Positions 6,591-28,453 of a stretch of 64,000 nt of DNA are shown in pieces; positions within the stretch are counted from its first letter, which is position 1; every line of letters begins with the position of its first letter. The notes beneath the pieces were generated by a model. The model had not been told where the DNA came from. It saw nothing but the letters and a program-made list of their open reading frames with translations, and did no database searches. The stretch covers positions 124,001 through 188,000 of the IMG/VR virus record IMGVR_UViG_3300032322_002561; one strand, written 5' to 3'. Made by a program: the position numbers and the translations under genes.

Positions 6591-7187
6591 TTATTTGCGT
6601 CCAATTACCATGAATCTTGTGTATTCGGTTTCGGGATCACGTAAACGCATACGTCCATGATATAAAACTTTGCTAAGTGGAAAACGGTCCACTATGTCTT
6701 GTGTGCTTTCAAAATTCTTGTTTGGATCATGATCTCGCGCTTGCATGGCCACCAAGGTGCCCGAGGGTATGTTCAAGAACCAAGCTCGACCAGGCATGTC
6801 AGTAAGGCTGGTATTGATCACACAGCCCTGATCGCCTAGCTGTCTATAATCTAGCCGGTTGCTGTCAGCCAACATATATTCTGCATTGTCGACGCCCACA
6901 CGATCCAGTATCTTCTTGCTGCTTGATAAAAATTTCTTGTTTTTTTCTACCAGGACGATTTTGTCTGCACTGATTCGGCCTTCCAAGGTCATGTACAAGG
7001 CAGTGTTGCCATACCAGGAACCCAGCATGTAGATGGTTGAGAAACGATCTTGAATGCGTTCCAGTTCTTTCAACAACCAGACTTTGCTGGCTGTGAGATC
7101 GCGTGTGAAACTGCCAGCAAGGCTGTAGCCACTGCTTTCGTCTAGGTTAGACTGGTGCGTAAGGAAGTCTTGGAGTATCACTGCCAT
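6591..7187 (-). CDS. class I SAM methyltransferase with putative cleavable leader (ILQDFL...NLDE)
   Basis: MLGSWYG motif I, INTS, C-terminal YTRFMVIG. Confidence 0.7.
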   Translation of the reverse strand: MAVILQDFLTHQSNLDESSGYSLAGSFTRDLTASKVWLLKELERIQDRFSTIYMLGSWYGNTALYMTLEGRISADKIVLVEKNKKFLSSSKKILDRVGVDNAEYMLADSNRLDYRQLGDQGCVINTSLTDMPGRAWFLNIPSGTLVAMQARDHDPNKNFESTQDIVDRFPLSKVLYHGRMRLRDPETEYTRFMVIGRK

Positions 7188-7214
7188 CGTCCTCAGGCCA
7201 TACTGGATAATCGT

Positions 7215-7784
7215 TCATAGACCTGCCTTGGCCAGTGCAGCGCCTTTGTTGAAACTGGGACTATAAGGACTGTTGCCATCAACACCACCACGTGCTTTTG
7301 ACCATGCATAGCCTGCACGATGACCCGAACAGTCTTTGGTGCATTCGCTACCCAAGAACTGTAGTTCGTCCAACTGTTGTTCAGTTACTGGACCACCTTC
7401 AACCCAGGCATCACAGGTACGCTTGGCAGCACATTTGAATTTCAAGAATTTACAGTAGCCCAAATCGCCTGCATCAATGGTGTCGTGCGGATCACTTCCA
7501 GGTTCAGTGCCAATGCCACGGGCAATACAATCTAACATATCTTCTGATATGTCAAAGGCCGCACAGTTGCCACAACGGTTTTGTTTTACTGATTCAATGT
7601 CGTCGGTGTTCCACTTGTCAGCCAATTCAACCCAGTATTCTTCATTGGGCTCGTTGGGGTTCAAGGGCCCATAGTGATATTCGTCTATGGCTTTTTGACG
7701 ATTACGTAAATTAAGATCGATGCTCTGTGTGGCCGGAGGACAACCTTTTTCCACTGCTTCGATCAAGTTAATTAAATCACGCAC
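7215..7784 (-). CDS. putative head-cargo protein with two Cys-rich modules
   Basis: Leader MRDLINLIE; CGNC..C..C..C module; LDE then LQFLGSECTKDCSGH module. Confidence 0.6.
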   Translation of the reverse strand: MRDLINLIEAVEKGCPPATQSIDLNLRNRQKAIDEYHYGPLNPNEPNEEYWVELADKWNTDDIESVKQNRCGNCAAFDISEDMLDCIARGIGTEPGSDPHDTIDAGDLGYCKFLKFKCAAKRTCDAWVEGGPVTEQQLDELQFLGSECTKDCSGHRAGYAWSKARGGVDGNSPYSPSFNKGAALAKAGL

Positions 7785-7899
7785 TTTCTTTTAACCTTTG
7801 ACGATAAATGTGCAAGGCCTCGGTGAGATTCGCAGCCTCTATAACTTCGACTCGTTTACTGCCGTCGGTATTGGTGTGGGTAAATGTATAAGTTTTCAT
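7777..7899 (-). CDS. 40-aa small protein MKTYTFTHTNTDGSKRVEVIEAANLTEALHIYRQRLKESA
   Basis: Fills the gap with overlaps to both neighbours; translated by hand. Confidence 0.6.
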   Translation of the reverse strand: MKTYTFTHTNTDGSKRVEVIEAANLTEALHIYRQRLKESA

Positions 7900-9995
7900 A
7901 GTGTCATGCTACGTGGTTGTCCAAACACACGAATGGCTGCTTGTAATTGACGACGAAATGGTTCACCACTGCGATCATATTCAATCATGAGCCAGTTGCC
8001 CAGGCGATCTTGCACAAGTCCATATTCTTGTGCGGTACGGGCACTGTCCACTGTGAAGTAGTGCAGACGTCGAGCTCGTGGTTTACCGGGTTGTTGTTCA
8101 CGTACCAATGTAAGTTTGGCCACTGCCTGTTGCACGTCTTGTGGAAGTTTTTGCAAGGGTATTGGTACTTGTGTATATTGTCCAGTGGCAGAGTCGGTGT
8201 GAACCAGGATCATGGTACCATTGGGTTTTTTGGTAAATCTATAACCCAGGCGTTGCATGTCATTGCGTAGATCGGGTATTAGGCCTTGGGGATCACCGCG
8301 CACAATAAGCGTGATCATGTTAAGGGCTTTTTGTATGGCTAGATCTTGTCCAGGCAATTTGGGTTGTGGTTCCATGGCTCCGGGCAATGGAACGATTTCC
8401 TCTTGTAGCATACTATACAATGCACGGAACACTGATTCTTTTGTACCTGTTTTCATAACTCTTGGATCCCATGGTGGTGTTTGACTTCTGGTAGGAAACT
8501 TTAAAACTGTTGCGTCTGTTGGTTGTGGTGTAGCAGGTGTTGTGGATTGCGGTATGTTGACCACGTTGCTGCCACCACGCAGCGGTAGCTCGGATTGTGT
8601 TGGTTGCGGCGTTATTGGTTCTGCAAACAGGTCGCCTTGTTCGGGGTCGGCAGTTAGATCTTTTGCCAGTTTGTCTAATGCCGGGGATCGTGTTGGTTCG
8701 GCCTTGACCTTGGGAGTTGGTTTACGTGCTTTGCGACGTTGGACTGGTTTTTCTTTACCGGTAGCAACTGCTGGTGTAGTGTCTGGTTCTGCTGGTGTGG
8801 CAGGTTTCTTTTTTGGCGCAGCTTTGGATCTCACAGCTGGCTTTTCATCAGACTTTGGTTTGGGAGTAGGCAATGCAGGCTTCTTACCAGCGGCAATGTC
8901 TGCGGCTGTGTCTTTGGTGTCTGTGGGAGTCATACCTTGATCTTTGGCCCAGGTATCAAGTTCTTGGAAACGTCGTTCTTTGTCTTGTAGATCAGCCACC
9001 AATTCGGCCTGTTGTTGACGCAGTTGGCGTTCTTGTGCCAAGAGATCTCGTATGTCTTCGCGATCCTGTGCCTGCGTTTTGCGATAGTCAAAAATCAAGG
9101 CTTCAAGGTCGCTTTGTGCTTCAGGATTTTCAGCTCGTAGTTGGCGCATGATTCTCTGCGTTCTAGGATTGTCAAAATCTGTTTCTCTTTTTTCAAGCAC
9201 CGTGCTCTTGCCTAACTGCACAGTGCGGTCAGGAGGCAAAGGCTTTTGGGGAGTGCGTAAGCGGTGCATGACAATGGTTTGTTCAATGCGTTTGGCCACG
9301 GCTTGGGCTGTATCTGCATCTTCTTGTTTGACAGCTTCTTGAAACTTTTCCAACAAGGGCTTGATTTCGGGATATATGTCATCAAAGCTGGTGATTTTAT
9401 TGGTCAAGGCCTTGACCACTTGATTGGTATTGTATATTTTCAAACGATTCCGAATGGTGTAATATGCACCCAGCGTAAATGCTGTGCCGCCCAAGATTGC
9501 AACAGCCAAGGCATCTCGTAAGGCATTGTCAAGAAAAGGATCTACTGCTTCCAGTGTTCGGGTGGGTGGTTTTATACGATCTATTCTTGGTGCAATGTTG
9601 GCTGTGACATCAGTAGCCGCCGGTGCTGTGCCGTATTTGGCTTGTTTTTTCTTTTCTTTGCTGAGTTTTTGTTGTGCGATCAAAGGAGCTAGCCTGCGAT
9701 CAAGATCGGCCAACTGTGCTCGCAGTTGTGGTAGTTGGCTTGGCTTGTATGGTATACCATAGATTTTGCTGGCCTGTTTGATAGCATCCTCGTAGTCCAA
9801 TACTATGCCTTCACGACCAGCATCTCGCATGGCCATGGCAGCTGCTTTGTACAGCAGTTGATTGGCAGTGATTTCTGGACCTACTTTGACTTCTTCCACA
9901 GGCACACAGTTGGGCACCTGACGATCGCCTTTTTTCTTCATGCCAGCTTGGCGGTAACCCTTCCAGCAACGTTCAGATAAATCTTGAAACTTCAT
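7896..9995 (-). CDS. multi-module putative head-cargo polyprotein
   Basis: Leader MKFQDLSE; CWKGY...PNCVP peptide; coiled-coil and Pro/Ala/Lys segments separated by [LV]xE. Confidence 0.65.
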   Translation of the reverse strand: MKFQDLSERCWKGYRQAGMKKKGDRQVPNCVPVEEVKVGPEITANQLLYKAAAMAMRDAGREGIVLDYEDAIKQASKIYGIPYKPSQLPQLRAQLADLDRRLAPLIAQQKLSKEKKKQAKYGTAPAATDVTANIAPRIDRIKPPTRTLEAVDPFLDNALRDALAVAILGGTAFTLGAYYTIRNRLKIYNTNQVVKALTNKITSFDDIYPEIKPLLEKFQEAVKQEDADTAQAVAKRIEQTIVMHRLRTPQKPLPPDRTVQLGKSTVLEKRETDFDNPRTQRIMRQLRAENPEAQSDLEALIFDYRKTQAQDREDIRDLLAQERQLRQQQAELVADLQDKERRFQELDTWAKDQGMTPTDTKDTAADIAAGKKPALPTPKPKSDEKPAVRSKAAPKKKPATPAEPDTTPAVATGKEKPVQRRKARKPTPKVKAEPTRSPALDKLAKDLTADPEQGDLFAEPITPQPTQSELPLRGGSNVVNIPQSTTPATPQPTDATVLKFPTRSQTPPWDPRVMKTGTKESVFRALYSMLQEEIVPLPGAMEPQPKLPGQDLAIQKALNMITLIVRGDPQGLIPDLRNDMQRLGYRFTKKPNGTMILVHTDSATGQYTQVPIPLQKLPQDVQQAVAKLTLVREQQPGKPRARRLHYFTVDSARTAQEYGLVQDRLGNWLMIEYDRSGEPFRRQLQAAIRVFGQPRSMTL

Positions 9996-10828
9996 TTTTT
10001 CTTGTTGCCCCAGTTGGCGGCACCTTTCTTACGACATTGCACAAGGGCACCCGATGCATAAGCTGACGGCCAGACCTTGTAACGACTTTTTACTTTTTGA
10101 TAGCAGGCGTCTTGTTTTTCATCAACTTGATCTCGGTTGACATGTTTTTCTAAACGATCAATAGCACCCTTCATGTCTTCGCGACCTTGCCGGGCTGCGG
10201 CCTGACGCTTTGCTTCTATTTCGTCGTGTTTGCGTTCGCGTTCAGCGGCAGCACGTCTAAATTTTTCCAGTGCAGTTTGACCTTTGCCTTCATCCATGTC
10301 ACGCTGACGACGCTTGCCAAAGTATCGTTGTATGGCAGGATCATCACGATCCACTGCTACCAGGCGCTCGGGACTGATATACCAGCCTTTACCGTCACGA
10401 TCTAGTATGCGAACTCTACGCTCGCTGGGATCACCACTCATGCGGAACACTTCCCCATATTCGCCATCCTGACTGTCACGCACATAATCACCGTCTCGCA
10501 AGCGGCTATCTTCGTCATCATACCAGTCATCGTCGTCTGTGTATTGTTCTTTTACTTTGGTGGCCACATTTTTAGCGGCTCCTCTACGTTCTGGATCGGG
10601 ATCTTCTCTGCGCTTCTTGGCCGCAGCTGACGCACGACCTTTTTTGCCCAGGGCATGTGCCTTGCTCTGTGGCAGGCATTTTGGTTTGCCTTCTGATTCT
10701 GATCCTCGGGCACAACTGCCACGGATTTTACCATCGGGGCCAAAACGCACCCATTTTTCCTTGAACCACTTGCGTAGGTTTTCTTCAACGGGGTCAACAG
10801 TGTTTTCAAATAAATCAGTCAAAATCAT
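9992..10828 (-). CDS. putative head-cargo polyprotein of basic Cys-paired peptides and an SH3/KOW-like module
   Basis: Leader MILTDLFE; junctions VEE/NLRKW, VKE/QY, MDE/GK, VDE/KQDAC. Confidence 0.65.
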   Translation of the reverse strand: MILTDLFENTVDPVEENLRKWFKEKWVRFGPDGKIRGSCARGSESEGKPKCLPQSKAHALGKKGRASAAAKKRREDPDPERRGAAKNVATKVKEQYTDDDDWYDDEDSRLRDGDYVRDSQDGEYGEVFRMSGDPSERRVRILDRDGKGWYISPERLVAVDRDDPAIQRYFGKRRQRDMDEGKGQTALEKFRRAAAERERKHDEIEAKRQAAARQGREDMKGAIDRLEKHVNRDQVDEKQDACYQKVKSRYKVWPSAYASGALVQCRKKGAANWGNKKK

Positions 10829-10859
10829 GGTTTTGTTCTCTCTGAATATTTATTGCGTT

Positions 10860-11447
10860 TTAACGCCCAGTCCACTGTGCAATCATGCTGGCATCACCCG
10901 AATATATGCTGCGACCCGGTCTCAAGGCCTTTATGCTGCGGCGTCCCGACTGTATGGGGAAAGTGTATGTGATCGTGTTGCGAGTTTCATGCACTATTTC
11001 GTCACCGGGCTGGGGGTTGTAATCCTGTTGAGACTGTTTGGCGATTCCGCTCACTTCCACACCAGGTATGCGGTTTAACTTTAACCACATGGCCTGCCCA
11101 TGCTTGGTTTGTGTTTTGCCGGCTCTCAGCGTTAATTTTAATATGCTGAGTGCTATGCCATACAGGGCCAAGCCCAGACCCTGTCCACGATAGTCAGGAT
11201 CAGTAGCCACAGTTTCCACACGATAACTGTCTAGCATATCTCCTGTGGGTAGCACATCTAATTCAGCTACCAAACTGTTTTGATCAAAGATCATGATTTG
11301 TTTGAGATCGCCCTCGTGTTGTACGGCATAACTGTAGCCACTGCCGCCGGGCAAAGGTCGGGCACCACGAGGGGTCTGCATGGGTGCAAGAGTATCCTTG
11401 TCGCCAAAGTCACCCTGTGGTATACGAGCTATTTCCATGATTTTCAT
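10860..11447 (-). CDS. GNAT-family acetyltransferase
   Basis: DPDYRGQGLGLALY acetyl-CoA motif, QTKHGQAMW; leader MKIMEI. Confidence 0.8.
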   Translation of the reverse strand: MKIMEIARIPQGDFGDKDTLAPMQTPRGARPLPGGSGYSYAVQHEGDLKQIMIFDQNSLVAELDVLPTGDMLDSYRVETVATDPDYRGQGLGLALYGIALSILKLTLRAGKTQTKHGQAMWLKLNRIPGVEVSGIAKQSQQDYNPQPGDEIVHETRNTITYTFPIQSGRRSIKALRPGRSIYSGDASMIAQWTGR

Positions 11448-12328
11448 GCTGGTTCCTGAACAGCCATAGACTGTAAACTCTGGCTGGCAATATTTACGTC
11501 AAATCCTTTGTTGACAAACCACTGTATCAATGTCAGACGTTGGTCATGGGATAAACTCTGCACCACATCTCTATGCACTGCCGATATCAAGTTTGTGGGC
11601 ACACTGTACCACTTGTCCAACATATTGTGCTCGATGTCTGCTTGGGTGATGTAGTATGTATCTGCCAACGACAAGTCTGATTTGGCTGTGATTTCAGCGG
11701 CAGTAATACAGTTATAAAAGTTGTGCGCAATCAAACTGTAAAAAATAAATTCAGATTCCCAATAATCAAACGGTTTTGATACTTCGTTGAAAAGATAGTC
11801 TATATCAAAACTCACACAGTGTTGAGCAATTACAGTGTTCATTACAAACGGAGTCAGGACTTCGTATGTGTGTGATGTAGAATTGAGACCAAGGATCTTG
11901 GCTACACTATCTAGCCAGGTTTGTCTGGGTCCAGTGGCACACACATCAGTTATGATGGGTCTGCCATTCAAGCAAGGCCAGTTTGACAATGATTGCTGAC
12001 GCCAGAAAAAATTCTTGCTGTCCAAGACCATGTAACGTTCATTTGAGATCAACTGTGATGCCATGAGTTTTAACAACTGTTGTCTACGATAACCGTGCCG
12101 ATCGGGTCGATGATAGTGTGTTTCTGGTAACAAAGTTGGAGACAGTTTTAATGTGTGTCGATGATAGAATGGAGTTAATTTTTCTCTCCAAATTTCTAAA
12201 TCACTTTGGTCCTGAACAATGATCCAGTGCGTGATAGGATTTGTAACAAAAAGATCAATACTGTGAGCTTGAAACAACAGTTGATTCAAGTCACTCAACT
12301 GTGATACAGTTACAACATCCTGAATCAT
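11444..12328 (-). CDS. putative glycosyltransferase-like protein (paralog family)
   Basis: GYRRQQLLKL, VLDSKN, TPFVM, SEFIFY. Confidence 0.55.
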   Translation of the reverse strand: MIQDVVTVSQLSDLNQLLFQAHSIDLFVTNPITHWIIVQDQSDLEIWREKLTPFYHRHTLKLSPTLLPETHYHRPDRHGYRRQQLLKLMASQLISNERYMVLDSKNFFWRQQSLSNWPCLNGRPIITDVCATGPRQTWLDSVAKILGLNSTSHTYEVLTPFVMNTVIAQHCVSFDIDYLFNEVSKPFDYWESEFIFYSLIAHNFYNCITAAEITAKSDLSLADTYYITQADIEHNMLDKWYSVPTNLISAVHRDVVQSLSHDQRLTLIQWFVNKGFDVNIASQSLQSMAVQEPA

Positions 12329-12504
12329 GATTTGACTTCTCTCACGTTGCTGACTATACTGTCAACGCCATATTGTGCTCTAAGCAGGCGTTTGGCCAAT
12401 TCATAATTGCGAGCAACCACCTGTGTGTCAATCAAGGTGGCACTGTTTTTAAGTTTGACTCTTGCATGAAAAGTCTTGAGATTTTCCAATTCTTTGACTT
12501 TCAT
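12325..12504 (-). CDS. small protein (MKVKELE...)
   Basis: ATGA overlaps with both neighbours; start at 12504 preferred. Confidence 0.65.
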   Translation of the reverse strand: MKVKELENLKTFHARVKLKNSATLIDTQVVARNYELAKRLLRAQYGVDSIVSNVREVKS

Positions 12505-15500
12505 TTCTTTTTGGATCTTCCTGACTTCATGTTGGCACACCAGTGATACATTTTGGCTTTCTCACCACTGGCATTTTTAGCTCGTTGACGTAGGCTTGTA
12601 ACTGAGCCATTGCAACTGGCCCCCGCACGTTTTACACGTCCAGGACGGCTCTTGCCTTTGACCTTGCCATCTGCAAAGTTTTCATTGACGTCATCACCTA
12701 GCTTGCGAGCCATTTGAATCTGCTGGGTCATGTTTTCTATGTCATGCTGATCAATGGCTTGCCCAATAGCGCTGCGAGATTTCAGCGAACGTACCACTGG
12801 CTCCACGGGTTCCACACGGTCCATGGATTTTTTCTTGATGACGGGTCTTGGTGGCACAGCACCTGCACCTGATACAGGATCTATGGCCTCGGCTACAATT
12901 CGGGTTCTAAGGAGTCCTGGTGGCATGCCCTCTTGTTCTTGTTGAGCTATCCAGGCACGCACTTCGTCAGCTGTGGCGTTACGCATGAAATGTATCACAC
13001 GGTCAGGATCATCATCCAGAACCAACTCGTAGTTCTGTCGCCGTGGCTCAAAGTTCTGTGCCACATCTGTGTTGACATCCTGCACACCCAGTCTGCGTTG
13101 TACGTCCACACTATCTCTTTGATCATCGGCGGCCTGCTGACCTTTTCTGTAGCCATAGTCAGCAGTGTCGTTGGGCAAGTCTTTCATCTTGAGCCACCGA
13201 TCAAACACACGACTGGCTTCCTGATCACTGTTGGCATGGAATCGGTCAACTACTCGCAAGTCTACAGTGCGTTGATCCACAATTTCATAGTTGTATTGAG
13301 TTGCTGTTGCGGGTTTCTTGACAATACGTTTGGCCACTTGTGCTCTGGGGCTGACTTTGGGCTCTGGCGTCTCATCAGGCCTGCGATATATGTTCCAGTC
13401 CAAGGACCGTTCTCCATATTCGTATTGGACCCGTTGCGTGGCTTTGTCAATGTCAGAAGCACGCATGGTCAGGAGCATTTTGCCCGTTGCATCAAACACA
13501 TCAAACCAGGGCTGTTTGATGCGCACATCAAGCTCATTAATGTCCCGACCGTATTGTCTCAAGAAAAGATCATAGGCTGAGTCATAGTCTTTAGCATACA
13601 GTGTGCCAACGATTCCGTCAGGGCTGTCTTTGTTGTCTCTGCGATAGACTTCGTATTCGTCTTTGCCTGTGCCAGGCAACTCTTTCTGTAGCACAGTATC
13701 AGCCCATTGTTTCTTTAACTGTTCTTTGTTGATGGTACCTGCTGAAAACTCCGAGAACAAGCGAAGTTGGTCCGCATATTGTTCGTTGTCTTGGGTAACC
13801 AACTTGTATAGTTTCTTGGCATACTCCTGGCGTTCGGCACTGGGATCACCGGCTATGGCCATGGCTCGGGCAAAACGCAACATGGTATTTTCTAATATGC
13901 CGATTTCTTCATCGCCTTTGGCCAACCAGTCGCCTCCGGGGCTACGGAATTCCACATAGCCATCTTGTAAATGTGCTGACGTATACTTGCTGGTGCCCAC
14001 ACCTTTTTGCAGTTCTCGGTAGGCCAACTCAGTGAGTCCATGACGCAACAATTCTACCACACCGGCTGGATCACTGCGTCCACCTTTGATGTTTTGTTTT
14101 AACTTGTCCAAGGCCGACGCACAATAGGTGTTAGCTGTACGACCAAACTGCTGTTGCACATACTTGTCGCCCATGAACAGGATCAACTTTACATAGTCTA
14201 TACCGACACTATCGTTGGCGTCTTCAGATTTGATCCGAGGCAAGCTCACGCCCATGTGCAGGCCTGTGGAACTATTGGTATAGGCGTTGCCACCGTTGGG
14301 ATCATTGGCCCAGTCTACCACTGCCTTTAATTTTTCTATGGCCATCAGCAAGGGCATGGGTGGGCTGACTATTTCAAGACCCATTTCTTCACTCTTGTCA
14401 TCGGGATCCAGGCTGCCATCGGGTTCTATGATCCAGGTGCCTTCTCTGCGTGCGGCACTGTGATAATTGGTGCTGACTTTGACAGGCATGTCCACTGCAT
14501 CTTGCAAGCTACTACCAATGTCGTCCCAATCACGGCTACCATTGTTGCTCTGGGCATCCATGTTCCACACAGGCCAGTCCAAGTTGTATTCGTTGGCAAT
14601 GTCACTCATCCAACGCAGTCCGACATCTGAAAAGAAGCTGTCACTGTCAGGACTATAGCTGTCACGGAAATCGTCCAGGGCCTGATCATAATAGCCGTCT
14701 TGTTTACGTATGCTGGTTTCTACTTCTTCGTCTAGGATGGCGTCGGCATCATCCACGGCTTCCATGTAAGTCCTGTAGTCAGGATTCTGTTCAGCAAAAG
14801 CTTCTTGTTCAGCTGAGGTCGTAAATTTGGGTGCGTCTGAACCCAGTCTAAATATCTTTTCGGCTTGATCGTCAGTGAGTTCCATGCCATCTGTTAGCAC
14901 GGCCAGTATACGCTCGCCCATGGGCACTTCGTCGAGATGCTGTTCACGCACTAGGTCTTCGGCTTCGTTGCCAAAATCTTCACGCACCCGCTCATCGTAC
15001 CAGTTCATGTAGGTTTCGTCTAAGTCGTTTTCCAGTCTGCTGACTCCGCGATCACTGAGTCCAAACCCATATTCATCGTTACTGAAAAACTCTATAACCT
15101 GCTGTATGCTGTAGGCACGCTCGTCGTAGTCGTAGTCGGGCTCAGGATCCATCTCATCACTTTCACCCTGTGTGTCACGGAATATGAGTTCAGCTTCAAA
15201 ACCAGCACGTATGCCCTTGGCTGCATCCGACGTGGCAAACTTTTCCAAGGCCGTGGGACTCATTTTGACTTCGTCAAGATCATCTTCATCTAGTTGTTTA
15301 CCTTGTGCTCGCGCTATGGCATCTTGCCCGGCAACAAAATCTTTTGCCGCAATGCCTTGGCCGGCTGACTGGCGTTGTTTGAGTCCTGGCAATAGTGGCA
15401 AGCCTTTTTTCTCGTGCGACTTCAGTTGTGCTTGCAATCGTTGTTGTAGAGCTGGTGTATCATAGAACAGGGCATCCACAGCATCTAGGATATAGACCCA

Positions 15501-18799: not shown

Positions 18800-19798
18800 T
18801 TATTTTTTACGACCAGCGCAGTGCGCTTTTTGGCTAAAGCCCCTGGGGTTGTTGCAGTTGATTGAACGCTTGTATTTGGCAGACCACTTTTCGTCTATGT
18901 AGTCATCGCTCTCATTGTATGTGGCGGCCCAGCCTTGATTTTCGTCCATTTCTTTTTGTTTTTTAGCCACGTAATTTGTGATACGGCTCTTGGTCACACT
19001 GTGCTGTGCTTTTGTGGGATTGGCATAATTGCCTGGTTTGGAGTAAACCAGCTTATCGCCGCGATATATTTCTACTCGATCAGGATGATATTTGATAGTG
19101 TACCCTTGATACGCAAAAGATTTCACATCGTAGGTAGAAGTTGACACTGGTCGAGTCATGGTTTTTTTCTGTTTGGCCACTGCTTCGGGATTGGAGGGGA
19201 ATGATTCTTCCATGCCCAATATAGCAGTGTCTAGTAACTTTACTACATTTTGTGCCAATGCAGGATTCTTTTGTGTGATGGGGTACAGGCTCATGACAAG
19301 AGCCTGTTTGCGTCGGTCATTTAATCGAGGCCATGCCGCACGTATTTCTGTAGCCGAAGTCATACCAGGACCAAATTCCACAGTGGGCAAATAGGCCATA
19401 TAAGCATGTTGAGCAAATGGTGCTAGATCCTGTTGTCCTTTGTAGGGCTGTAGATAACTGGGCGATCCATCTTTTTTGACGCCACCTGCTTGTGGCGGTT
19501 TGTCAGCATCTTTTTCACTGCGCACAAAGATCAACTGATCGGTTTCAGGGTCAAATCCAGCAGTGATTTCCTTGGCTTGGAACGGGCTTTTGACTTGTAC
19601 AAAATGGCCGGGTTCAACACCGGCCAACTTGGCCAGCTTTTCTTTTACAGCAAATGGAAAAGGTCGTGCTGACGTATCATTTGTGGCTGCCACAAACACT
19701 TCAGCATTGGGGAACGCTTTGCGTGCAGAGTTATACAGGGCATAATGACCTGCATGAAAAGGATGGAACCCACCGGGCATAACGACAATTTGCTTCAT
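18800..19798 (-). CDS. HIGH-family nucleotidyltransferase with C-terminal small modules
   Basis: PGGFHPFHAGH, SATEIR; C-terminal IDE/KWSAKYKRSINCNNP...C. Confidence 0.75.
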   Translation of the reverse strand: MKQIVVMPGGFHPFHAGHYALYNSARKAFPNAEVFVAATNDTSARPFPFAVKEKLAKLAGVEPGHFVQVKSPFQAKEITAGFDPETDQLIFVRSEKDADKPPQAGGVKKDGSPSYLQPYKGQQDLAPFAQHAYMAYLPTVEFGPGMTSATEIRAAWPRLNDRRKQALVMSLYPITQKNPALAQNVVKLLDTAILGMEESFPSNPEAVAKQKKTMTRPVSTSTYDVKSFAYQGYTIKYHPDRVEIYRGDKLVYSKPGNYANPTKAQHSVTKSRITNYVAKKQKEMDENQGWAATYNESDDYIDEKWSAKYKRSINCNNPRGFSQKAHCAGRKK

Positions 19799-20362: not shown

Positions 20363-21067
20363 TTATAGCCGTTTGATCACGGGCACGCTTTTGCGTATTG
20401 CACCAGGTGCCAGTATGGCCAGCATGGTTTCGTACTGTAGATTGTTGTGTTCGATATAAAAGTAACGCTGACACCAATCACTGCGCCAGGTCTTGCCAGG
20501 TTGATTCAACCAGTGCCATAAAGCTCGACTGGCTTGTGCCTGTACAGATTCCTGATCTTGTTGAGCCACAATCCAGGCCTTTAATTGCGACTTGGTATCC
20601 AGTGATATCTTGCGCTCGCGGAAAAAAGTTCTATATTTGAATTTTGGATTATTGATCACTATGCTGTCTTTTGGTTTATCTACCACAGCTTGTCTTATAA
20701 CTCTACCAAATTCTACCTGCGGGCAACGATACAAGGCATGGCACAGATTTGCATCGTTGGTATAAACCGTGGCCCAATCCATGCTGACCACCAATTTGAA
20801 CTCGGCTGGCCAATTCAACAATAGGTCTCGAGTGGCGCACAAATTTTCTACTGATTCCTGTGTAAAACACTTGCTCTTGCCATCAGAACGATTATTTAGA
20901 TGTATGCTCCAGCTGCGTCGTAGGTTGATGAATTTGTTCAAGGTTTGCGGGCTAGGCATGCCACGCAAGGCAAAAATTTCAGTTTGTTTAAATGTAAAAG
21001 CGTAACTGTATAGATCATAATACAGTCGATCTCGATGTTCAATCTTGATTGCTAATTGAGTCAACAC
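20363..21067 (-). CDS. hypothetical protein
   Basis: Long ORF in operon order. Confidence 0.65.
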   Translation of the reverse strand: MLTQLAIKIEHRDRLYYDLYSYAFTFKQTEIFALRGMPSPQTLNKFINLRRSWSIHLNNRSDGKSKCFTQESVENLCATRDLLLNWPAEFKLVVSMDWATVYTNDANLCHALYRCPQVEFGRVIRQAVVDKPKDSIVINNPKFKYRTFFRERKISLDTKSQLKAWIVAQQDQESVQAQASRALWHWLNQPGKTWRSDWCQRYFYIEHNNLQYETMLAILAPGAIRKSVPVIKRL

Positions 21068-23362: not shown

Positions 23363-24136
23363 TCAAACTCTATGCTTTTTTATTGCGGCAATTATTTCTG
23401 GAGCAATCTGGGATGGCAAATAGGTACCAAGCCTCACAAACACGTCGCCTTGATTATTGTTGCGATCTCGCAGACCTTGACCACGCAAACGCAACAATGT
23501 GCCGGGTTGAGTTCCTGCTGGAATAGCGGCCGACAACGAGGCATTGGTTATACTGGTAAGATTCAAGGAGCCGCCCAAGATCAAGTCCCACACTGGAACC
23601 TTTTGATCAATTATGAGATTGAGACCGTGTCGTTCCCACTGCTGATGTGGATGCACTCTGAATTGTACTACCAAATCAGATCCACCAGGACCAATTCCAG
23701 CATATTGAACGTTGTCACCGTCATTGATGCCCACGGGTATATCTATAGACACTGTGCTGGTGCCAGACGTGGTGCCAAGATTGACAGTTCTTGAGCCGCC
23801 CAGGGCCACATCATTCAGAGTTATCCATAGTGTCAATCTAACATGACCTGGACCTCTGCGTGACTGATGATGGAAATTTTGTCCAAACATGCTGAACAAA
23901 TCGTTGAAGTCAAACCCAGCATTGCCAAATCCTGCAAAATTGGTTTGTGGATTATCGTAACCAGATCGTCGTTGCGGGTCACTCAAGACATCGTAGGCTT
24001 CTTGAATTTCTTGAAATTGTTTGGTATCACCACCTCGGTCCGGATGGTGTTGTGCAGCCAAACGCCGATAAGCACGTTTTATGTCATCGGCATTGGCTGT
24101 ACGATCTACGCCTAAAGTTTGATAGTAATTTTTCAT
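23363..24136 (-). CDS. DnaJ-class co-chaperone without Zn finger (CbpA-like)
   Basis: J-domain HHPD, G/F region, DnaJ C-terminal LRLRGQG. Confidence 0.9.
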   Translation of the reverse strand: MKNYYQTLGVDRTANADDIKRAYRRLAAQHHPDRGGDTKQFQEIQEAYDVLSDPQRRSGYDNPQTNFAGFGNAGFDFNDLFSMFGQNFHHQSRRGPGHVRLTLWITLNDVALGGSRTVNLGTTSGTSTVSIDIPVGINDGDNVQYAGIGPGGSDLVVQFRVHPHQQWERHGLNLIIDQKVPVWDLILGGSLNLTSITNASLSAAIPAGTQPGTLLRLRGQGLRDRNNNQGDVFVRLGTYLPSQIAPEIIAAIKKHRV

Positions 24137-24184: not shown

Positions 24185-24370
24185 TTATTTCTTTTTGTCA
24201 GGAACCGGAGTACCTTCAAGTTTTTTATGAACCTTGATGTCTTTGCACACTTCTTTTTTGGTTTTTTCATCCTTTTTGCAAACACGTTTGGTCTCACCAG
24301 CGGCATTGGCCACGGTAATAAAACTCACAGCTATAACTGTGGCCCAACAAATTTTTACGATTGCGTTCAT
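24185..24370 (-). CDS. small exported protein
   Basis: Signal peptide ending ANA; Cys pair; SD AAGGA. Confidence 0.65.
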   Translation of the reverse strand: MNAIVKICWATVIAVSFITVANAAGETKRVCKKDEKTKKEVCKDIKVHKKLEGTPVPDKKK

Positions 24371-24382
24371 GATTGTTTCCTT

Positions 24383-24844
24383 TTAGATTTCAGGGTGTGG
24401 CGGCTGTTGTGGAGCCGCAAAGGGTGAAGGCTTTGGTGCCGGTGCGGCAAAGGCGGGTGCTGTACTCATGCTATTGCCACCTAATGGTACTGAGCCAAAA
24501 CTGGGTGCAGGAGCCGCCACCGGTGCGCCAAATGCAGGCGCAGGACCACCGGCCTTGTCATTTAGCTTTTCTTGTGTGCGACCATATGCGGCAATACCCA
24601 ATATGGCACCCATGGCGATGTGGAACAGGCCAGCACCTTGAAGTGTGATAGGCATCCACTGACTTTCTACTTTGCCATCACCCAAGGTCTGGACCAGGCT
24701 CCATAATATAGGAAATATCACAAAGTCCATGGTACACACCAACATGTACATCCAACCCATGGCTGGACGCCATTTTTTGTTCATCCAATCTTCTTTGGCT
24801 TTGTCTGAATCAGACATTTTTGCATACTCTTCGGCTGTGGCCAT
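24383..24844 (-). CDS. 3TM holin-like membrane protein
   Basis: KWRPAMGWMY, hydrophobic helices, GRTQEK. Confidence 0.7.
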   Translation of the reverse strand: MATAEEYAKMSDSDKAKEDWMNKKWRPAMGWMYMLVCTMDFVIFPILWSLVQTLGDGKVESQWMPITLQGAGLFHIAMGAILGIAAYGRTQEKLNDKAGGPAPAFGAPVAAPAPSFGSVPLGGNSMSTAPAFAAPAPKPSPFAAPQQPPHPEI

Positions 24845-24881
24845 TTGTTGCTCCTTTTATAATTTTTATTATGTGCTACTA

Positions 24882-25142
24882 TTATACTGCACTGGCTATA
24901 GCAACCAAGGCAGTTATAGCTGTATTTAACCTTTGCTTGGTTTCAAATTCGGACATGTTTTCTGTGATAGTGATCTGACGCTGTAGATCTAATAAGAGTT
25001 CTGCGTATTCTGCTTGACTGATGTTGCCGGCACGCAGTTCTTCGCCATAGGCCGCTGTGGCCGTGGCTACCATACGAGTATTTTCATCGTCGGGATTGTT
25101 CAAGATATGTAGCACTTCCGTTTCCCATTGTTGCCAAGTCAT
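24882..25142 (-). CDS. hypothetical protein (MTWQQWE...)
   Basis: SD AAGGAG before ATG 25142; track start is over-extended. Confidence 0.7.
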   Translation of the reverse strand: MTWQQWETEVLHILNNPDDENTRMVATATAAYGEELRAGNISQAEYAELLLDLQRQITITENMSEFETKQRLNTAITALVAIASAV

Positions 25143-25152
25143 TGTGTTCTCC

Positions 25153-26028
25153 TTATTCAGTGGGTTGTGGTCGTAACAAACGACTCCAGCGTTGTAACCA
25201 GCTGGGTTCTTTTTTGATCTCGGGTTCTGGTCGCTTTTCGGGCTCGGGCGGAGGCTTGGGCATGTCTTTGAATTCCGTCTCGCGACCTTGACCAGCACCA
25301 CCCTTCCAAAAAGCCTGACCCATGGCTGTTTGTGCTGTGCCTGGCACGATGTCATTGCCTAATTTTCTGGCAAAGTTATACATGGCCGATGCTAACCCTT
25401 GTCTTCTGTAGCGTTCATCAACATTTAGCATGACTGGCCTTAAATTCCAGTCATTGGTTTCTTTGTTGAATCGAGCATAGAAGCGCACTTCGGCTATGCC
25501 ATAGCGTTGGGCCATCCAGTTTTTGTCAGCAGGATCAAATATTCTTATACTGATACCGCGGCTGTCTCGCATGGCTGGATCTGGGTCATTCTTCCAGGGT
25601 TCCATGCCTGTGGCACGAATTGTGAATCCATTGGGCAGTTGACGCTCTATTTCAAAGCCATCTTTAACTGTGTCAGGATTGATTTTTTCTTGTAGATATT
25701 CATTGTCTTCCCATACCGTGGCTTCTGCGCCGCGATGTTTATCCCAAAAGCTCCGACCAGCGTCAGTCTGATCCCAACTGCGGACGATGGTATAGCCTTG
25801 GCTTTTTAAATAATCATACATGGCGGCCGCAATGCCTTGACCGTGATAGCGTTCATCTACCCATACCGTTTGTGGATCTAATCTACCTTCATCATCGTAG
25901 AAAAATTCTGCCATGCCCAATTCTCTGGCACCATCTGCACCATAGGCTCGTATGGCCACACCATCCGCATCCTTGCTTATTTTAAGGCTCATGCCTTCAT
26001 AATCTTTCACAAACTCTTGGGCTCTCAT
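25153..26028 (-). CDS. tandem GNAT acetyltransferase polyprotein
   Basis: Two units VDERY[HR]xQG[IL]AxAMY...QTxxGxxFW; leader MRAQEF; linker VWE/DNEYLQE. Confidence 0.8.
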   Translation of the reverse strand: MRAQEFVKDYEGMSLKISKDADGVAIRAYGADGARELGMAEFFYDDEGRLDPQTVWVDERYHGQGIAAAMYDYLKSQGYTIVRSWDQTDAGRSFWDKHRGAEATVWEDNEYLQEKINPDTVKDGFEIERQLPNGFTIRATGMEPWKNDPDPAMRDSRGISIRIFDPADKNWMAQRYGIAEVRFYARFNKETNDWNLRPVMLNVDERYRRQGLASAMYNFARKLGNDIVPGTAQTAMGQAFWKGGAGQGRETEFKDMPKPPPEPEKRPEPEIKKEPSWLQRWSRLLRPQPTE

Positions 26029-27869
26029 AGGCTGTAGGGATCCACTATAACAAGATGACCGTTGTTGCGTCGGCCAAGATTTTCCACTGCTGATAAATCC
26101 AGGGGTGCCTGCCCACCCAGAGCTTGGATCATGTGTTCGGTGGCCTGCAACAAGCCTGCCAGTTGTTGTTGTCCAATTTCATCGGGCACAGGATTCTGTT
26201 TCACAAACTCTGGACCCTGACCTCGATCCACGGCACTCATTAGTTTTTCAATGTAGTCCAAGGTAGCTTCTTCGTTGGCCACGTAGTTCACACGTTCCAT
26301 TTCATACACAAAGTAGGTTTCACCGTCCACTGTGAAGTTGCCTGAGTTGTAGATCCTGGGATAGAAAGGATTGCGTTGATTTTGCTCAAAGAAACGCACA
26401 TAGTTTTTTACAATCTGTTCACGTTCTGGATCACCAGTGCCTAGCACTTTGACTATGGTACCTCGCGGACTTTCAAACGCCATCTGGTCGCGTCCTTCAC
26501 CAGCTAACTCATAGCCACGCTGGAAAAAATATTCTTGTATTCTATCACTGACAGTGAGTTCGTCAGGATAGTTGACTTCATTTACCTGTGCCACGGGTCT
26601 CCAGGCCTGGATATAGTCACGATTCAATAGATACTTTGCGGCCCAAGCACGATGATTGCCATCTATGATGTAGCGATCAGCATCTATTACAATGGGTTTC
26701 CGGTCTACCAAGTGAGCACTGACTTCGCCAGCATGGCCAGGTTCTACCATCATTACTCTGCCGTAGGGATCACTTTCAGGTTCGTCGTCATCGTAGTCCA
26801 CGTCATCGTATTCTTGATCAGGTATGTTAAGGTTAAGTAGTGGAACTTGAACCAGTTCCCACTGTGGGTGTGCTAACACAGCTCGGGCTAACTTGTCTGT
26901 CATGGGTTCGTGATGTGTCTTGTTTATGTAAGCCAGGACTTGTTTCGCTGTGGCTTGCTGTGCTTCTTGAATAGGTTGCCGTTTTCTAAATATGCTGTAT
27001 AGAATAGGAAAATCTTCGTCGCCTACCATGTCCTGTACCAAGGGTCGGGCACCACCTTCACGCTGGATAAAATCCTGATACACCTGTTGATACACAGCTT
27101 CAGGATCTCTGCGATAGTCTGCACTGCTTTTACAGTCGCTGGTGAATCCTTCAAAGTGTATGCGATAGGCTCCTATGTCTTCCACACCACAGTCGTCAGG
27201 ATTTAGGCTGTCTAGGAACTGTTCTATGGCTCTAGGTATGCGTGCTTCTTTGAGATTTTGTTGTCGATCCAGGTAGTACAAATTCCAGCCAGGAGGATGT
27301 TCAGTCGATGCCCGCCATTCTGGGCCCAGGACACGCTGTAGCAAAGGCAGTAATCGGTCATAGAGTTTCGCACGGCTGGTGTCAGTGCCTATGGACTTGT
27401 ACCAAACTCGCTTGGGTTTGTAATAAGCCACTGCTTCGGGCAATCTAGCAAGTATCACATTGATAGCAGACATCAAGGTCTGGGTACTGCCTGGTTTGCC
27501 CTTGTCTTTTTCCAATGCAAATCCACGACCGTCCACACTGAAGTTTATTTCTAATCCCTTGGCGGTATTTTTAAAAAACACTTCTAGGTTGTGTTCACCA
27601 GCCTTGGTCTTAAATCTACTACGACTCTGGTGTGCGGCAGGTTCACTTTTTACTGGGCGATCAAATATTTCTTCTAGATTTTTAAAATCGCGAATCCAGG
27701 TCCATCTTGTGTCGGCGTCAATCCATTTCACACCCATGCTATTACGTTTATGCGGTTCGGTATCTATCAGCCAGTCACCCTTTTCGTCTCTGCGGAGGAT
27801 TCTTACCACCTGGCCTGTGCGTTCTAATTTACCCATGCGAAATGGTGCGGCAAATTCTTCAGCTCTCAT
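26025..27869 (-). CDS. multi-module protein with ParB/Srx-like and protein-kinase-like domains
   Basis: Leader MRAEEF; IIDGNHRAWAA; GEGRD..VKV..YEMERV..DL...NLG..IVDP. Confidence 0.7.
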   Translation of the reverse strand: MRAEEFAAPFRMGKLERTGQVVRILRRDEKGDWLIDTEPHKRNSMGVKWIDADTRWTWIRDFKNLEEIFDRPVKSEPAAHQSRSRFKTKAGEHNLEVFFKNTAKGLEINFSVDGRGFALEKDKGKPGSTQTLMSAINVILARLPEAVAYYKPKRVWYKSIGTDTSRAKLYDRLLPLLQRVLGPEWRASTEHPPGWNLYYLDRQQNLKEARIPRAIEQFLDSLNPDDCGVEDIGAYRIHFEGFTSDCKSSADYRRDPEAVYQQVYQDFIQREGGARPLVQDMVGDEDFPILYSIFRKRQPIQEAQQATAKQVLAYINKTHHEPMTDKLARAVLAHPQWELVQVPLLNLNIPDQEYDDVDYDDDEPESDPYGRVMMVEPGHAGEVSAHLVDRKPIVIDADRYIIDGNHRAWAAKYLLNRDYIQAWRPVAQVNEVNYPDELTVSDRIQEYFFQRGYELAGEGRDQMAFESPRGTIVKVLGTGDPEREQIVKNYVRFFEQNQRNPFYPRIYNSGNFTVDGETYFVYEMERVNYVANEEATLDYIEKLMSAVDRGQGPEFVKQNPVPDEIGQQQLAGLLQATEHMIQALGGQAPLDLSAVENLGRRNNGHLVIVDPYSL

Positions 27870-28453
27870 GTTCTATGATACTCCGACGCTTGGCCATTGG
27901 GATCCACATGCCAGGCATAGAATCGGCTCCAAGGATATTCTTGTTTGAGGCTTAGGAACGCATTCAAGTTGGGCACTGAATCATCGTACATGATCAGCTT
28001 GTCAAAGTGTTCCTTGCCCAACAAGTGCCGTAGTATGATCTTTTTCTTTTCTTCTGTGGCGGCCTTGATGGCCAGGTTGCCAGCACGATACACATGTACT
28101 TTGTCCATGTTGATACCAAAGCGTCTAAAGGTATCTAGGAATATGTCTCGATCGTTGAAGTCCGATCTGGCAGTGAGCATGATCACTCGATTGCCCGTGG
28201 CTATGTCGTGCTTGAGTTGTTTGATCATGCCAGGTATGGGTCGTGCCTTGGTAAAAAACTCTCGGGCATCTTGAAACTCACCAAAGTCAAATGTTTCACC
28301 GGGTTGTAGTCGGTAGTGTGTGAAGTCGTGACTGTTTAATTTTTTGACAATTTTCCCATCACGAACTACACCTACCTGGGTGTCGGTGTTGACCAAGGTA
28401 TCGTCAATGTCAAATATGACTAGTTTTTCGTTTCCAAGTTCGCTGGCTCTCAT
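27866..28453 (-). CDS. HAD-superfamily phosphatase
   Basis: IFDIDDTL, LTAR, K, YDDS; leader MRASEL. Confidence 0.85.
   Translation of the reverse strand: MRASELGNEKLVIFDIDDTLVNTDTQVGVVRDGKIVKKLNSHDFTHYRLQPGETFDFGEFQDAREFFTKARPIPGMIKQLKHDIATGNRVIMLTARSDFNDRDIFLDTFRRFGINMDKVHVYRAGNLAIKAATEEKKKIILRHLLGKEHFDKLIMYDDSVPNLNAFLSLKQEYPWSRFYAWHVDPNGQASEYHRT

Follow-up and report, generated by a model that had tools for sequence, protein, structure and literature searches.

Polyproteins of an uncultured jumbo phage joined at putative head-protease sites

Why would unrelated enzymes encoded by a jumbo phage share the same few N-terminal residues, and why should a similar short motif recur between the modules of its polyproteins? 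The question arises from a 64,000-nucleotide stretch (hereafter, the window) covering positions 124,001 to 188,000 of IMG/VR record IMGVR_UViG_3300032322_002561, a 236-kb uncultured jumbo phage whose clamp loader is 50% identical to that of Pseudomonas phage PA5oct. A sequence-only reading of the window proposed that these proteins are modular strings, in which one N-terminal tag loads many domains into the head and a T4-like prohead protease frees them by cutting after [LIVM]-x-Glu, so that they could act on the next host. As discussed in the following sections, the observation is confirmed and the interpretation is supported. These results suggest that the phage loads an exchangeable set of enzymes into its head, frees them by cleavage, and injects them with its DNA. 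However, cleavage, packaging, and injection of these particular proteins, as well as what they modify, are inferred, and a probability of about 0.65 is assigned to this reading.

An aliphatic-x-Glu motif at N-termini and module borders

All nine N-termini noted in the sequence-only reading are present on the minus strand (Table 1). The pattern ^M.{2,4}[DE][LFIM] fits 8 of 17 genes in the region, in contrast to 2 of 53 elsewhere in the window (Fisher p = 9e-5). In related loci, it fits 26% of 1,554 genes, compared with 7.9% at internal Met residues, and its presence is all-or-none per protein family. Codon use is ordinary and shows that the motif is selected at the protein level rather than the RNA level. 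Notably, the Glu of [LIVM]xE peaks at positions 5, 8, and 9 (76, 76, and 68 cases, respectively, over a background of about 10-15). Three of the tags (MRA.E) nevertheless have Ala, not an aliphatic residue, at P3. The region also contains untagged, unrelated genes, including a ClpA-like ATPase, DnaJ, a holin-like gene, DUF6492, and others. Its earlier description as a late region is not shown, and no T4-type late promoters were found around the genes.

Table 1. Tagged and modular genes in the region (window coordinates; residue numbers refer to the encoded protein).
Position (strand)	Feature	Motif and module organization	Support
12501..17867 (-)	1788-aa polyprotein, starts MNIHEL	Modules delimited by conserved [LIVM]xE at Glu 235, 285, 302, 426, 608, 671, 866, 1660, and 1729	27 orthologues with variable module content
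17163..17867 (-)	Module 1 (residues 1-235), nucleotidyltransferase	Ends in the invariant L-S-L-x-E; stand-alone homologues end exactly there	phrog_36119 at 3e-38; Pfam NTP_transf_2 weak; Foldseek hits AadA/AAD(9); pLDDT 70-93
16962..17162 (-)	Residues 236-302, disordered Lys-rich then Gly-rich peptide and short DGVxPST..FLxE peptide	Cut into pieces by two further conserved sites (E285, E302)	pLDDT below 50 for residues 242-303
16590..16961 (-)	Module 2 (residues 303-426), zincin-like metallopeptidase	AHELxH...ENEA motif invariant in 27 orthologues	Foldseek hits minigluzincins abylysin and jannalysin at probability 0.99-1.0; pLDDT 81-94; no Pfam hit
15855..16043 (-)	Residues 609-671, highly conserved ~60-aa 'SGYIP' peptide of unknown function	Bounded by [IVLM]xE on both sides (E608, E671)	Preceded by the motif in 27 of 30 distinct contexts
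13680..15269 (-)	Residues 867-1396, amidoligase module	Preceded by the invariant L-x-E / [VI]-x-M-[SG]; stand-alone homologues carry an N-terminal tag followed by the same junction	Pfam Amidoligase_2 at 32-35 bits (cut-off 22); motif in 26 of 26 contexts
12504..12680 (-)	Residues 1730-1788, C-terminal basic Cys-containing 'NFADG...HWCANMK' module	Preceded by [VI]xE	80-93% identical in dozens of otherwise unrelated contigs; motif in 62 of 71 contexts
26025..27869 (-)	614-aa polyprotein, starts MRAEEF	Borders at E67, E208, E302, and E431; residues 303-431 ParB_N-like (a lead), residues 432-614 protein-kinase-like (a lead)	A relative keeps residues 1-68 plus 422-614, and the other modules occur alone elsewhere; atlas searches; no Pfam or PDB sequence hit
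9992..10828 (-)	278-aa protein, starts MILTDLFE; chain of small modules (KWV..PKC, a middle domain, a helical part, DUF5872)	All five [LIVM]xE sites (E8, 16, 94, 180, 237) lie at the tag or at module borders	Homologous to Syn9 gp114
7896..9995 (-)	699-aa protein, starts MKFQDLSE	CWxGY..PNCVP module ending at V-E-E35; the rest Lys/Pro-rich with a membrane-like helix	Fused to the 278-aa protein in relatives
7215..7784 (-)	189-aa Cys-rich protein, starts MRDLINLIE (GTG start) followed by AVEKGCPPATQ	Same module internal in relatives, after SVTE or GVAE, fused to the cytidylyltransferase	Motif in 16 of 16 contexts
10860..11447 (-)	195-aa GNAT-like protein, starts MK-IME followed by IARIP	In five relatives, C-terminal half of a 394-aa HAD-GNAT fusion with junction VME followed by IARIP	Weak GNAT hit
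27866..28453 (-)	195-aa HAD-family phosphatase, starts MRASEL	N-terminal half of the HAD-GNAT fusion in relatives	
25153..26028 (-)	291-aa protein with two GNAT domains, starts MRAQEF		Pfam Acetyltransf_7 at 36.9 bits; internal repeat seen in BLAST
18800..19798 (-)	332-aa cytidylyltransferase-like protein, no N-terminal tag	[LIVM]xE at its domain end (E198) and before its C-terminal 'INC..P.GFSQ.AHC' module (E303)	Motif in 25 of 25 contexts
12325..12504 (-)	Small ~59-aa protein, starts MKVKELE	Overlaps the end of the polyprotein gene by 4 bases	Internal ATG at 12504 of ORF 12325-12540; homologues start there
6591..7187 (-)	198-aa protein, class-I methyltransferase-like fold (a lead)	No clear tag; membership of the set doubtful	No Pfam hit

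All 16 border sites proposed for the 1788-, 614-, and 278-aa proteins also exist. Because [LIVM]xE occurs about once per 60 residues, such sites could have been picked by eye from a chance pattern. Indeed, the 1788-aa protein has no overall excess of the motif (30 sites against 26.6 expected), and a loose N-terminal pattern (Glu of [LIVM]xE anywhere up to residue 11) fits about 15% of genes anywhere in the genome. However, the proposed sites coincide with independently defined borders, namely the ends of modules identified by BLAST and the transitions between fold and disorder in the AlphaFold model at residues 241/242, 303/304, 420/421, and 606. Across 1,624 proteins from 80 related contigs, the motif was found at 40.8% of 346 N-side junctions (null 16.2 +/- 1.9%) and at 67% of 191 C-side junctions (null 18.4 +/- 2.7%). 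These values stand 13 and 18 standard deviations above position-shuffled nulls, although the junctions are partly homologous and the z-scores thus overstate independence. The enrichment is 2.9-fold and 4.35-fold for LIVMxE at N- and C-side junctions, respectively, whereas the control motifs are flat: LIVMxD gives 0.77/0.69, LIVMxQ 1.0/0.48, LIVMxK 1.0/0.5, AGSxE 1.2/0.7, and FYWxE 0.94/0.99. Moreover, ten unrelated module families carry the motif at a fixed offset in 60-100% of distinct upstream contexts, nine of them at 87% or more. Together with the conservation described below, these tests reject a chance origin.

Conservation and module exchange at the motif

In 27 orthologues of the 1788-aa protein, the P3 aliphatic residue and the P1 Glu are kept at the borders, whereas P2 takes 6-10 residue types. 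Of the eight sites originally proposed in this protein, six are conserved at 0.75-0.96, and the other two at 0.57 and 0.43. Most interior [LIVM]xE sites are not kept. However, one interior site (E1148, in the amidoligase core) is as conserved as the border sites, so conservation alone does not prove cleavage.

Modules are shuffled, fused, and split exactly at these sites. Examples include HAD with GNAT, the cytidylyltransferase with the CPPATQ module, the 699-aa with the 278-aa protein, and the loss of the middle of the 614-aa protein. Notably, the N-terminal tag MK-IME/IARIP equals the internal junction VME/IARIP. One refinement of the sequence-only reading is needed: the tag is not a separate signal that loads many domains but the same [LIV]xE unit that precedes every module. 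In its usual form, it is an 8-9-residue T4-like propeptide, M-[KR]-x-x-[ED]-[LIF]-x-E, followed by a small residue. The domain identities are confirmed for the nucleotidyltransferase, amidoligase, GNATs, HAD, cytidylyltransferase, and zincin, whereas the kinase, ParB_N, and methyltransferase remain leads only.

Because fusion and fission between tagged genes is frequent, internal copies of the motif could have arisen passively, as scars of repeated fusion, with the N-terminal motif serving another purpose such as folding, docking, or translation and no cleavage taking place. This explanation is unlikely. Scars would decay, yet L and E are kept across orthologues that are 35-70% identical while neighboring residues and P2 vary. 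The motif also marks the C-terminal ends of modules where stand-alone homologues simply stop. Furthermore, codon use excludes an RNA-level signal, and the purpose of the N-terminal motif would remain unexplained.

Candidate proteases and evidence from virions of a cultured phage

The inferred specificity matches that of T4 gp21. T4 Alt, gp24, gp22, and gp21 start MELITELFDE, MAKINELLRE, MLKEQLIAE, and MNEPQLLIE, respectively, and both the function of capsid-targeting sequences and gp21 cleavage are established (PMC3012670, PMC5694885). After E8/E9 and at internal junctions, P1' is A/G/S/D/N, as in T4. The closest cultured relative, PA5oct, has a gp21-family protease that is 37% identical to T4 gp21 and contains the catalytic motifs. 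In PA5oct-like head modules, the gp67-like protein, scaffold, protease, and major capsid protein all start M-x(1-9)-[LIVM]-x-E. However, tblastn identified no gp21-like protease, portal, or capsid gene in contig 49.8-236.3 kb, which is 79% of the genome and excludes the first ~50 kb.

Experimental support exists for one homologous module. Agrobacterium phage Atu_ph07 gp196, a homologue of the amidoligase module (30% identity over 243 aa, E = 3e-24), starts MRWQDISSKKLTE/LKMNSS, lies next to the portal gene, and gave 14 unique peptides at 30% coverage in purified virions. That phage has a gp21-like gp204. In contrast, the neighboring nucleotidyltransferase, gp195, was not in the virion list.

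Alternatively, the zincin-like metallopeptidase within the 1788-aa protein, rather than the prohead protease, may cut the [LIVM]xE junctions in cis and in trans, in the head or after injection. The invariance of its motif and its minigluzincin-like fold support this possibility, and exactly this role was proposed for such domains in injected multidomain proteins (Iyer et al. 2017, PMC5512222). Nevertheless, it appears improbable. The same motif heads the capsid, scaffold, and protease proteins of related phages, which are gp21 substrates in T4, and it occurs in Atu_ph07 gp196 and in S-CRM01 g125 and g129, which have no zincin neighbor. In addition, Glu-P1 specificity does not appear to be known for any minigluzincin.

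Against the packaging reading, several tags have only the E5 unit, a 5-residue 'propeptide' that is shorter than any known capsid-targeting sequence. After E5, the next residue is L, I, or F in 69 of 76 family representatives, and the genome encodes ClpS, a ClpA-like unfoldase with an IGF loop, and two cellular-type ClpP. Cutting M-x-[LI]-x-E before L/F could expose Leu or Phe for recognition by the ClpS-ClpA-ClpP system of the phage or host, timing the destruction of these enzymes rather than their packaging. This pro-N-degron reading is very doubtful because P1' is small or polar at E8/E9 tags and internal junctions, the hydrophobic residue after E5 is usually P3 of the E8 site, and an endoprotease is still required. 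Moreover, Ile is probably not a classical ClpS substrate.

The best explanation is that these genes encode head-internal cargo of a T4-lineage jumbo phage. In the inferred mechanism, the precursors join the scaffolding core of the prohead, where the head protease, which is active only there, cuts after each Glu. This would release separate enzymes, including a nucleotidyltransferase, a zincin peptidase, an amidoligase, GNATs, a HAD phosphatase, and kinase-like and ParB-like domains, as well as small Lys/Cys-rich modules, which stay in the head with the DNA and enter the next host with it. Action before phage gene expression, as the sequence-only reading proposed, likewise remains an inference.

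Comparison with known head-processing and polyvalent systems

Atu_ph07 gp196 shares the L-x-E / [LVI]-K-M-[SN] junction after a 13-residue N-terminus, but it is a single-module 500-aa protein annotated as hypothetical. The ejection and inner-body proteins of phiKZ-like phages (201phi2-1, phiKZ, SPN3US), processed by gp175/gp245, are also comparable. They involve a gp21-related protease cutting after x-x-Glu, many head-internal proteins, multiple sites per substrate, and conserved N-termini on diverged paralogues. However, they belong to a different phage lineage, their motif is S/A/G-x-E, which is not enriched here, their propeptides are longer than 100 residues and are discarded, and no multi-enzyme polyproteins have been described there.

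The T4 internal head proteins processed by gp21 (IPI-III, Alt, gp67, gp68, gp22, gp24) share with the proteins described here a short N-terminal propeptide rich in E-[LF] and ending in [LI]-x-E, which resembles the capsid-targeting sequences of IPIII, Alt, gp24, and gp22. In both cases, otherwise unrelated, fast-evolving proteins share only that start, and a gp21-family protease is present in the lineage. T4 packages and injects enzymes (the Alt ADP-ribosyltransferase) and basic DNA-associated proteins. In T4, multiple cutting only destroys scaffold proteins or removes one propeptide, whereas here the site also joins up to about nine modules in one chain, so cleavage would release several different enzymes. 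The tags are also shorter (5-9 residues, against 10-20), and the repertoire differs, comprising nucleotidyltransferase, amidoligase, GNAT, HAD, kinase-like, and zincin domains.

Polyvalent proteins of phages and conjugative elements (Iyer, Burroughs, Anand, de Souza, Aravind 2017, PMC5512222) similarly unite many disparate enzymatic domains in one polypeptide, include a zincin-like metallopeptidase, undergo extensive domain shuffling, and are predicted to be packaged and injected with the DNA. That work proposes processing by the embedded zincin or by assemblin-like peptidases, defines no junction motif, and mentions no amidoligase, capsid-targeting sequence, or cyanophage. The system described here probably combines T4-type capsid targeting and processing with polyvalent proteins: each module carries a T4-type head-protease site, and the same modules also exist as tagged single-domain genes.

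Genomic context and distribution of the N-terminal motif

The genes considered here lie on the minus strand of a jumbo phage with a T4-type core, whose clamp loader is 50% identical to that of Pseudomonas phage PA5oct. The genome also carries a gp31/GroES-like gene and tail-fibre genes, whereas no tRNA genes were found in the window and no near-identical match was found in the phage collection searched at the nucleotide level. The window occupies positions 124001-188000 of contig Ga0335305_1402472 from JGI metagenome 3300032322 (IMGVR_UViG_3300032322_002561, 236,309 bp). The same phage occurs as a 238,257-bp, differently permuted ENA scaffold, and it is also 100% identical over 12 kb to a contig from another sample. 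The genome is therefore probably complete at about 236-238 kb. Notably, a second jumbo phage is present in the same sample (IMGVR_UViG_3300032322_001765, 220,867 bp), and its capsid gene belongs to a very abundant PA5oct-like environmental clade, with a 34-base word of that gene being identical in 89 contig stretches. Features with coordinates are collected in the table below.

Features of the window and of the wider contig or retrieved loci (positions are those of the window unless prefixed with L, which denotes a numbered locus read separately)
Location	Feature	Remarks
10860-11447	GNAT-like gene, 195 aa	separate gene here
27866-28453	HAD gene	separate gene here
25153-28453	Three MRA-tagged genes	overlap by ATGA
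15855-16043 and 16962-17162	Two conserved peptides within the 1788-aa protein	a ~60-aa 'SGYIP...DPR..MALT.D..PG' segment and a Lys-rich/Gly-rich 'YGFGGYWYPG...GGGDGGGES' segment
7896-7990, 9992-10828, 12504-12680, 18800-18900; L166:5851-7182	Small Lys/Arg-rich modules with paired Cys	CWxGY..PNCVP, KWV..PKC, DUF5872, NFADG..HWCANMK and INC..P.GFSQ.AHC
21039-23315 and 23363-24136; L256:4103-4684 and 6274-6918; L258:731-4996	Proteostasis genes	ClpA-like unfoldase with an IGF loop (domains labelled ClpB-type by Pfam), DnaJ, two cellular-type ClpP, ClpX, ClpS, Hsp70/DnaK, Hsp20, ribosomal protein S21
38985-39386	GroES/gp31-like gene	grouped with the proteostasis genes
24383-24844	Holin-like gene (GTA_holin_3TM, phrog_3427)	in the middle of the block, between the chaperone genes and the tagged genes
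28865-30142	Full-length isocitrate lyase gene	344 bits to PF00463; directly upstream of the tagged gene block
37691-38614	Clamp loader	
39619-40732	Two short ORFs (179 and 204 aa)	the first matches a DNA-polymerase PHROG
L165:4958-7618	Complete 886-aa family-B polymerase	
L165:3250-3972, 4023-4961, 8377-9072 (contig 117.5-123.4 kb, just upstream of the window)	Three genes next to the DNA polymerase gene	start with T4-like 8-10-residue motifs (MKDYLLDLVE, MTLSDLIE, MSNNIHDILE)
L257:2751-9423 (contig ~208-215 kb)	Bacterial-looking genes	CsgG and CsgF curli-secretion components, a FecR-like gene, a CHASE2-guanylate/adenylate cyclase, with UvdE nearby

The nine tagged N-termini and the sixteen hydrophobic-x-Glu border sites on which the sequence-only reading rested are all present, although three of the nine tags (MRA.E) have Ala at P3. 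These three genes are joined by overlapping stop and start codons, an arrangement that forces an A-initial second codon and suggests translational coupling. The N-terminal pattern is concentrated in the region, being found in 8 of 17 genes compared with 2 of 53 elsewhere in the window (p = 9e-5). In 80 related loci fetched with the 1788-aa protein, 26% of 1,554 genes start this way, against 7.9% at internal Met residues, and families are either almost all tagged or not tagged at all. Among 875 family representatives, the Glu of [LIVM]xE peaks sharply at residues 5, 8 and 9 (76, 76 and 68 cases, respectively, against a background of about 10-15), whereas [LIVM]xK is flat and [LIVM]xD shows only a smaller bump at residue 5 (40 cases). 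Glu and Leu codons at the tag follow ordinary usage, so selection acts on the protein. In contrast, a loose version of the pattern, with the Glu of [LIVM]xE anywhere up to residue 11, fits about 15% of genes genome-wide and does not discriminate. The three genes next to the DNA polymerase gene may represent either further cargo or chance matches.

The sequence-only reading had placed these genes in a late region. This designation is not supported by the neighbours, which are a ClpA-like gene, DnaJ, a holin-like gene and isocitrate lyase. The T4 late-promoter sequence TATAAATA has 3 matches, no more than expected by chance, and counts of sigma-70 promoters and terminators are near shuffled expectation.

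Module borders, shuffling and domain identities

The 1788-aa protein has no overall excess of [LIVM]xE (30 sites against 26.6 expected), and position and conservation are decisive instead. In an alignment of 27 orthologues that are 35-70% identical and have different module sets, the motif is kept at E235 (0.96), E302 (0.76), E426 (0.75), E608 (0.88), E671 (0.93), E866 (0.92) and E1729 (0.90), while the middle residue takes 6-10 different identities at the well-sampled sites. Interior sites mostly score 0-0.58, with one exception, E1148, in the amidoligase core. Stand-alone nucleotidyltransferases end exactly at L-S-L, whereas stand-alone amidoligases start with a tag followed by the same L-x-E / [VI]-x-M-S junction. 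In an AlphaFold model of residues 1-700, predicted fold/disorder transitions fall at 241/242, 303/304, 420/421 and 606, next to the sites. The two conserved peptides that the predicted cuts would release have no known relatives.

Modules are also exchanged at these positions. For example, the separate HAD and GNAT genes of the window are one 394-aa protein in five relatives; the window GNAT begins MK-IME/IARIP, and the fusion reads ...GQ-VME/IARIP at that point. Similarly, the MRDLINLIE/AVEKGCPPATQ start of the 189-aa protein is internal elsewhere, as SVTE/AVKKCPPATQ and GVAE/AEKKCPPATQ, fused to the cytidylyltransferase. A relative of the 614-aa protein keeps only residues 1-68 and 422-614, and the other modules occur alone elsewhere. 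All five [LIVM]xE sites of the 278-aa protein are at its tag or its module borders. The N-terminal tag and the internal junction are therefore the same unit.

To test this association without bias, junctions were defined purely by BLAST as places where the sequence of a homologue starts or ends inside a longer protein, using representatives at 70% identity. [LIVM]xE lies in the expected window at 40.8% of 346 N-side junctions, against 16.2 +/- 1.9% for random positions in the same proteins, and at 67% of 191 C-side junctions, against 18.4 +/- 2.7%. This enrichment is specific: LIVMxE is enriched 2.9-fold and 4.35-fold at N-side and C-side junctions, respectively, whereas LIVMxD gives 0.77/0.69, LIVMxQ 1.0/0.48, LIVMxK 1.0/0.5 and FYWxE about 1. 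The small-residue motif expected of phiKZ-type protease substrates (S/A/G-x-E) can be set aside on the same grounds, as AGSxE gives only 1.2/0.7. Because the junctions are partly homologous, z-scores derived from them overstate independence. However, this does not affect the observation that ten unrelated module families (CWxGY, DUF5872, NFADG, SGYIP, CPPATQ, GNAT, amidoligase, INC..GFSQ, KWV..PKC and the DGVxPST peptide) carry the motif at a fixed distance in 60-100% of distinct upstream contexts, nine of them at 87% or more. The small Lys/Arg-rich modules with paired Cys recur at protein ends and are 80-93% identical between otherwise unrelated contigs; their function is unknown, and a role in tethering cargo to DNA is only a guess.

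Several of the domains could be assigned. Amidoligase_2 (PF12224) scores 32.4 and 34.7 bits against a cut-off of 22 over residues 1120-1261. Two GNAT domains are present in the 291-aa protein, with a weak GNAT hit in the 195-aa protein, and HAD and cytidylyltransferase-like domains were also confirmed. The nucleotidyltransferase is identified by PHROG, a weak Pfam hit and Foldseek matches to AadA/AAD(9), and the zincin by an invariant HExxH...E motif and Foldseek matches to minigluzincins. In contrast, the kinase-like (residues 432-614) and ParB_N-like (residues 303-431) regions of the 614-aa protein and the methyltransferase fold of the 198-aa protein are leads only. Pfam and PDB sequence searches for kinase, ParB, methyltransferase and zincin gave nothing usable, and single-chain-antibody (scFv) hits are an artefact of the Gly-rich linker. 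The 614-aa protein has no cultured homologue.

Relationship to head assembly

T4 Alt, gp24, gp22, gp21, gp67 and gp68 start with short stretches ending in [LIV]-x-E (NC_000866), and their role as capsid-targeting sequences removed by gp21 is established. The head maturation protease of PA5oct is 37% identical to T4 gp21 and has the His and Ser motifs. In PA5oct and in IMG/VR head modules of that group, the gp67-like protein, scaffold, protease and major capsid protein all begin M-x(1-9)-[LIVM]-x-E, as in MMLFE/F, MFDAIKPLLE/S and MSKVLLE/SRW. After E8/E9 tags and at internal junctions the next residue is A, G, S, D or N, as in T4, whereas after E5 it is L, I or F, usually because it is P3 of an E8 site.

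Indirect experimental support comes from Agrobacterium phage Atu_ph07, whose gp196 is homologous to the amidoligase module. This protein begins MRWQDISSKKLTE/LKMNSS, lies beside the portal gene and is listed among the proteins of purified virions, with 14 unique peptides and 30.2% coverage (Supplementary Table S5 of Attai et al., 2018; PMC6102473). Atu_ph07 also has a gp21-like prohead core protein, gp204. In the freshwater T4-like cyanophage S-CRM01, a tagged nucleotidyltransferase, a cytidylyltransferase and a kinase are neighbouring single genes, and Syn9 gp114, a chain of the small Cys/Lys modules, sits between the terminase genes. Virion data for RsoM2USA are uninformative, as only the ten strongest bands were analysed.

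A head protease was not identified in the part of this genome that was searched. Searches by tblastn with T4, PA5oct and 46 metagenomic proteases revealed no protease, portal or capsid gene in contig 49.8-236.3 kb, the first ~50 kb being unread, and no head genes lie within the window. Pattern scans with a PA5oct+T4 protease alignment and a 17-sequence capsid alignment returned other, very abundant phages, and a conserved capsid 34-mer hit the second, 221-kb phage from the same sample. Likewise, no head genes were seen in 12 exact-protein look-ups covering 56-236 kb of the contig or in an exact-word scan reaching 49.8 kb. The possibility that one of the two ClpP proteins acts as the head protease was rejected, since one scores 272 bits full-length to cellular ClpP (PF00574) and ClpX, ClpS and a ClpA-like gene accompany them.

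There is also a further, unlikely possibility. The aliphatic-x-Glu unit might be a portable 'cassette grammar', such that any domain placed behind it is taken into the prohead and cut free, and these phages would evolve their injected arsenal by cutting and pasting modules at the sites. Where cleavage occurs at the E5 unit, Leu or Phe would be exposed, and the injected enzymes would then be pro-N-degron substrates of ClpS-ClpAP, a system the phage itself also encodes. That would give the cargo a built-in lifetime in the next host.

Comparison with known systems

The proposed mechanism of head packaging and processing is well supported by comparative evidence and one proteomic anchor, although cleavage, packaging and injection of these particular proteins have not been demonstrated. 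If it is right, a large and environmentally abundant group of T4-lineage jumbo phages (relatives turned up in hundreds of metagenome contigs) delivers a changeable mix of protein- and nucleotide-modifying enzymes ready-made with its DNA. A six-to-nine-residue sequence rule would then predict which gene products are cargo and where the mature proteins begin, giving the annotation of 'hypothetical' jumbo-phage and cyanophage genes a concrete handle and offering short natural tags and linkers for packaging foreign proteins into phage heads. It would also link T4 capsid targeting and polyvalent proteins by one mechanism.

Each of these two known ideas covers part of the system. As in T4-type capsid-targeted proteins, a short N-terminal sequence ending in aliphatic-x-Glu is shared by otherwise unrelated proteins. 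As in polyvalent proteins (Iyer et al., 2017; PMC5512222), domains of disparate biochemical activity occur in one polypeptide: the 1788-aa protein holds a nucleotidyltransferase, a zincin, an amidoligase and small modules, and the 614-aa protein holds ParB_N-like and kinase-like modules. The embedded zincin-like metallopeptidase thought to process such chains is present and conserved. However, the polyvalent-protein study proposes zincin- or assemblin-mediated processing and does not mention amidoligases, capsid-targeting sequences or cyanophages. Work on phiKZ-like phages describes S/A/G-x-E sites in long discarded propeptides, and a 2026 review of jumbo phages mentions no such polyproteins. 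What is new here is a single head-protease-type site that serves both as N-terminal tag and as universal linker between exchangeable enzyme modules, across an abundant uncultured phage group.
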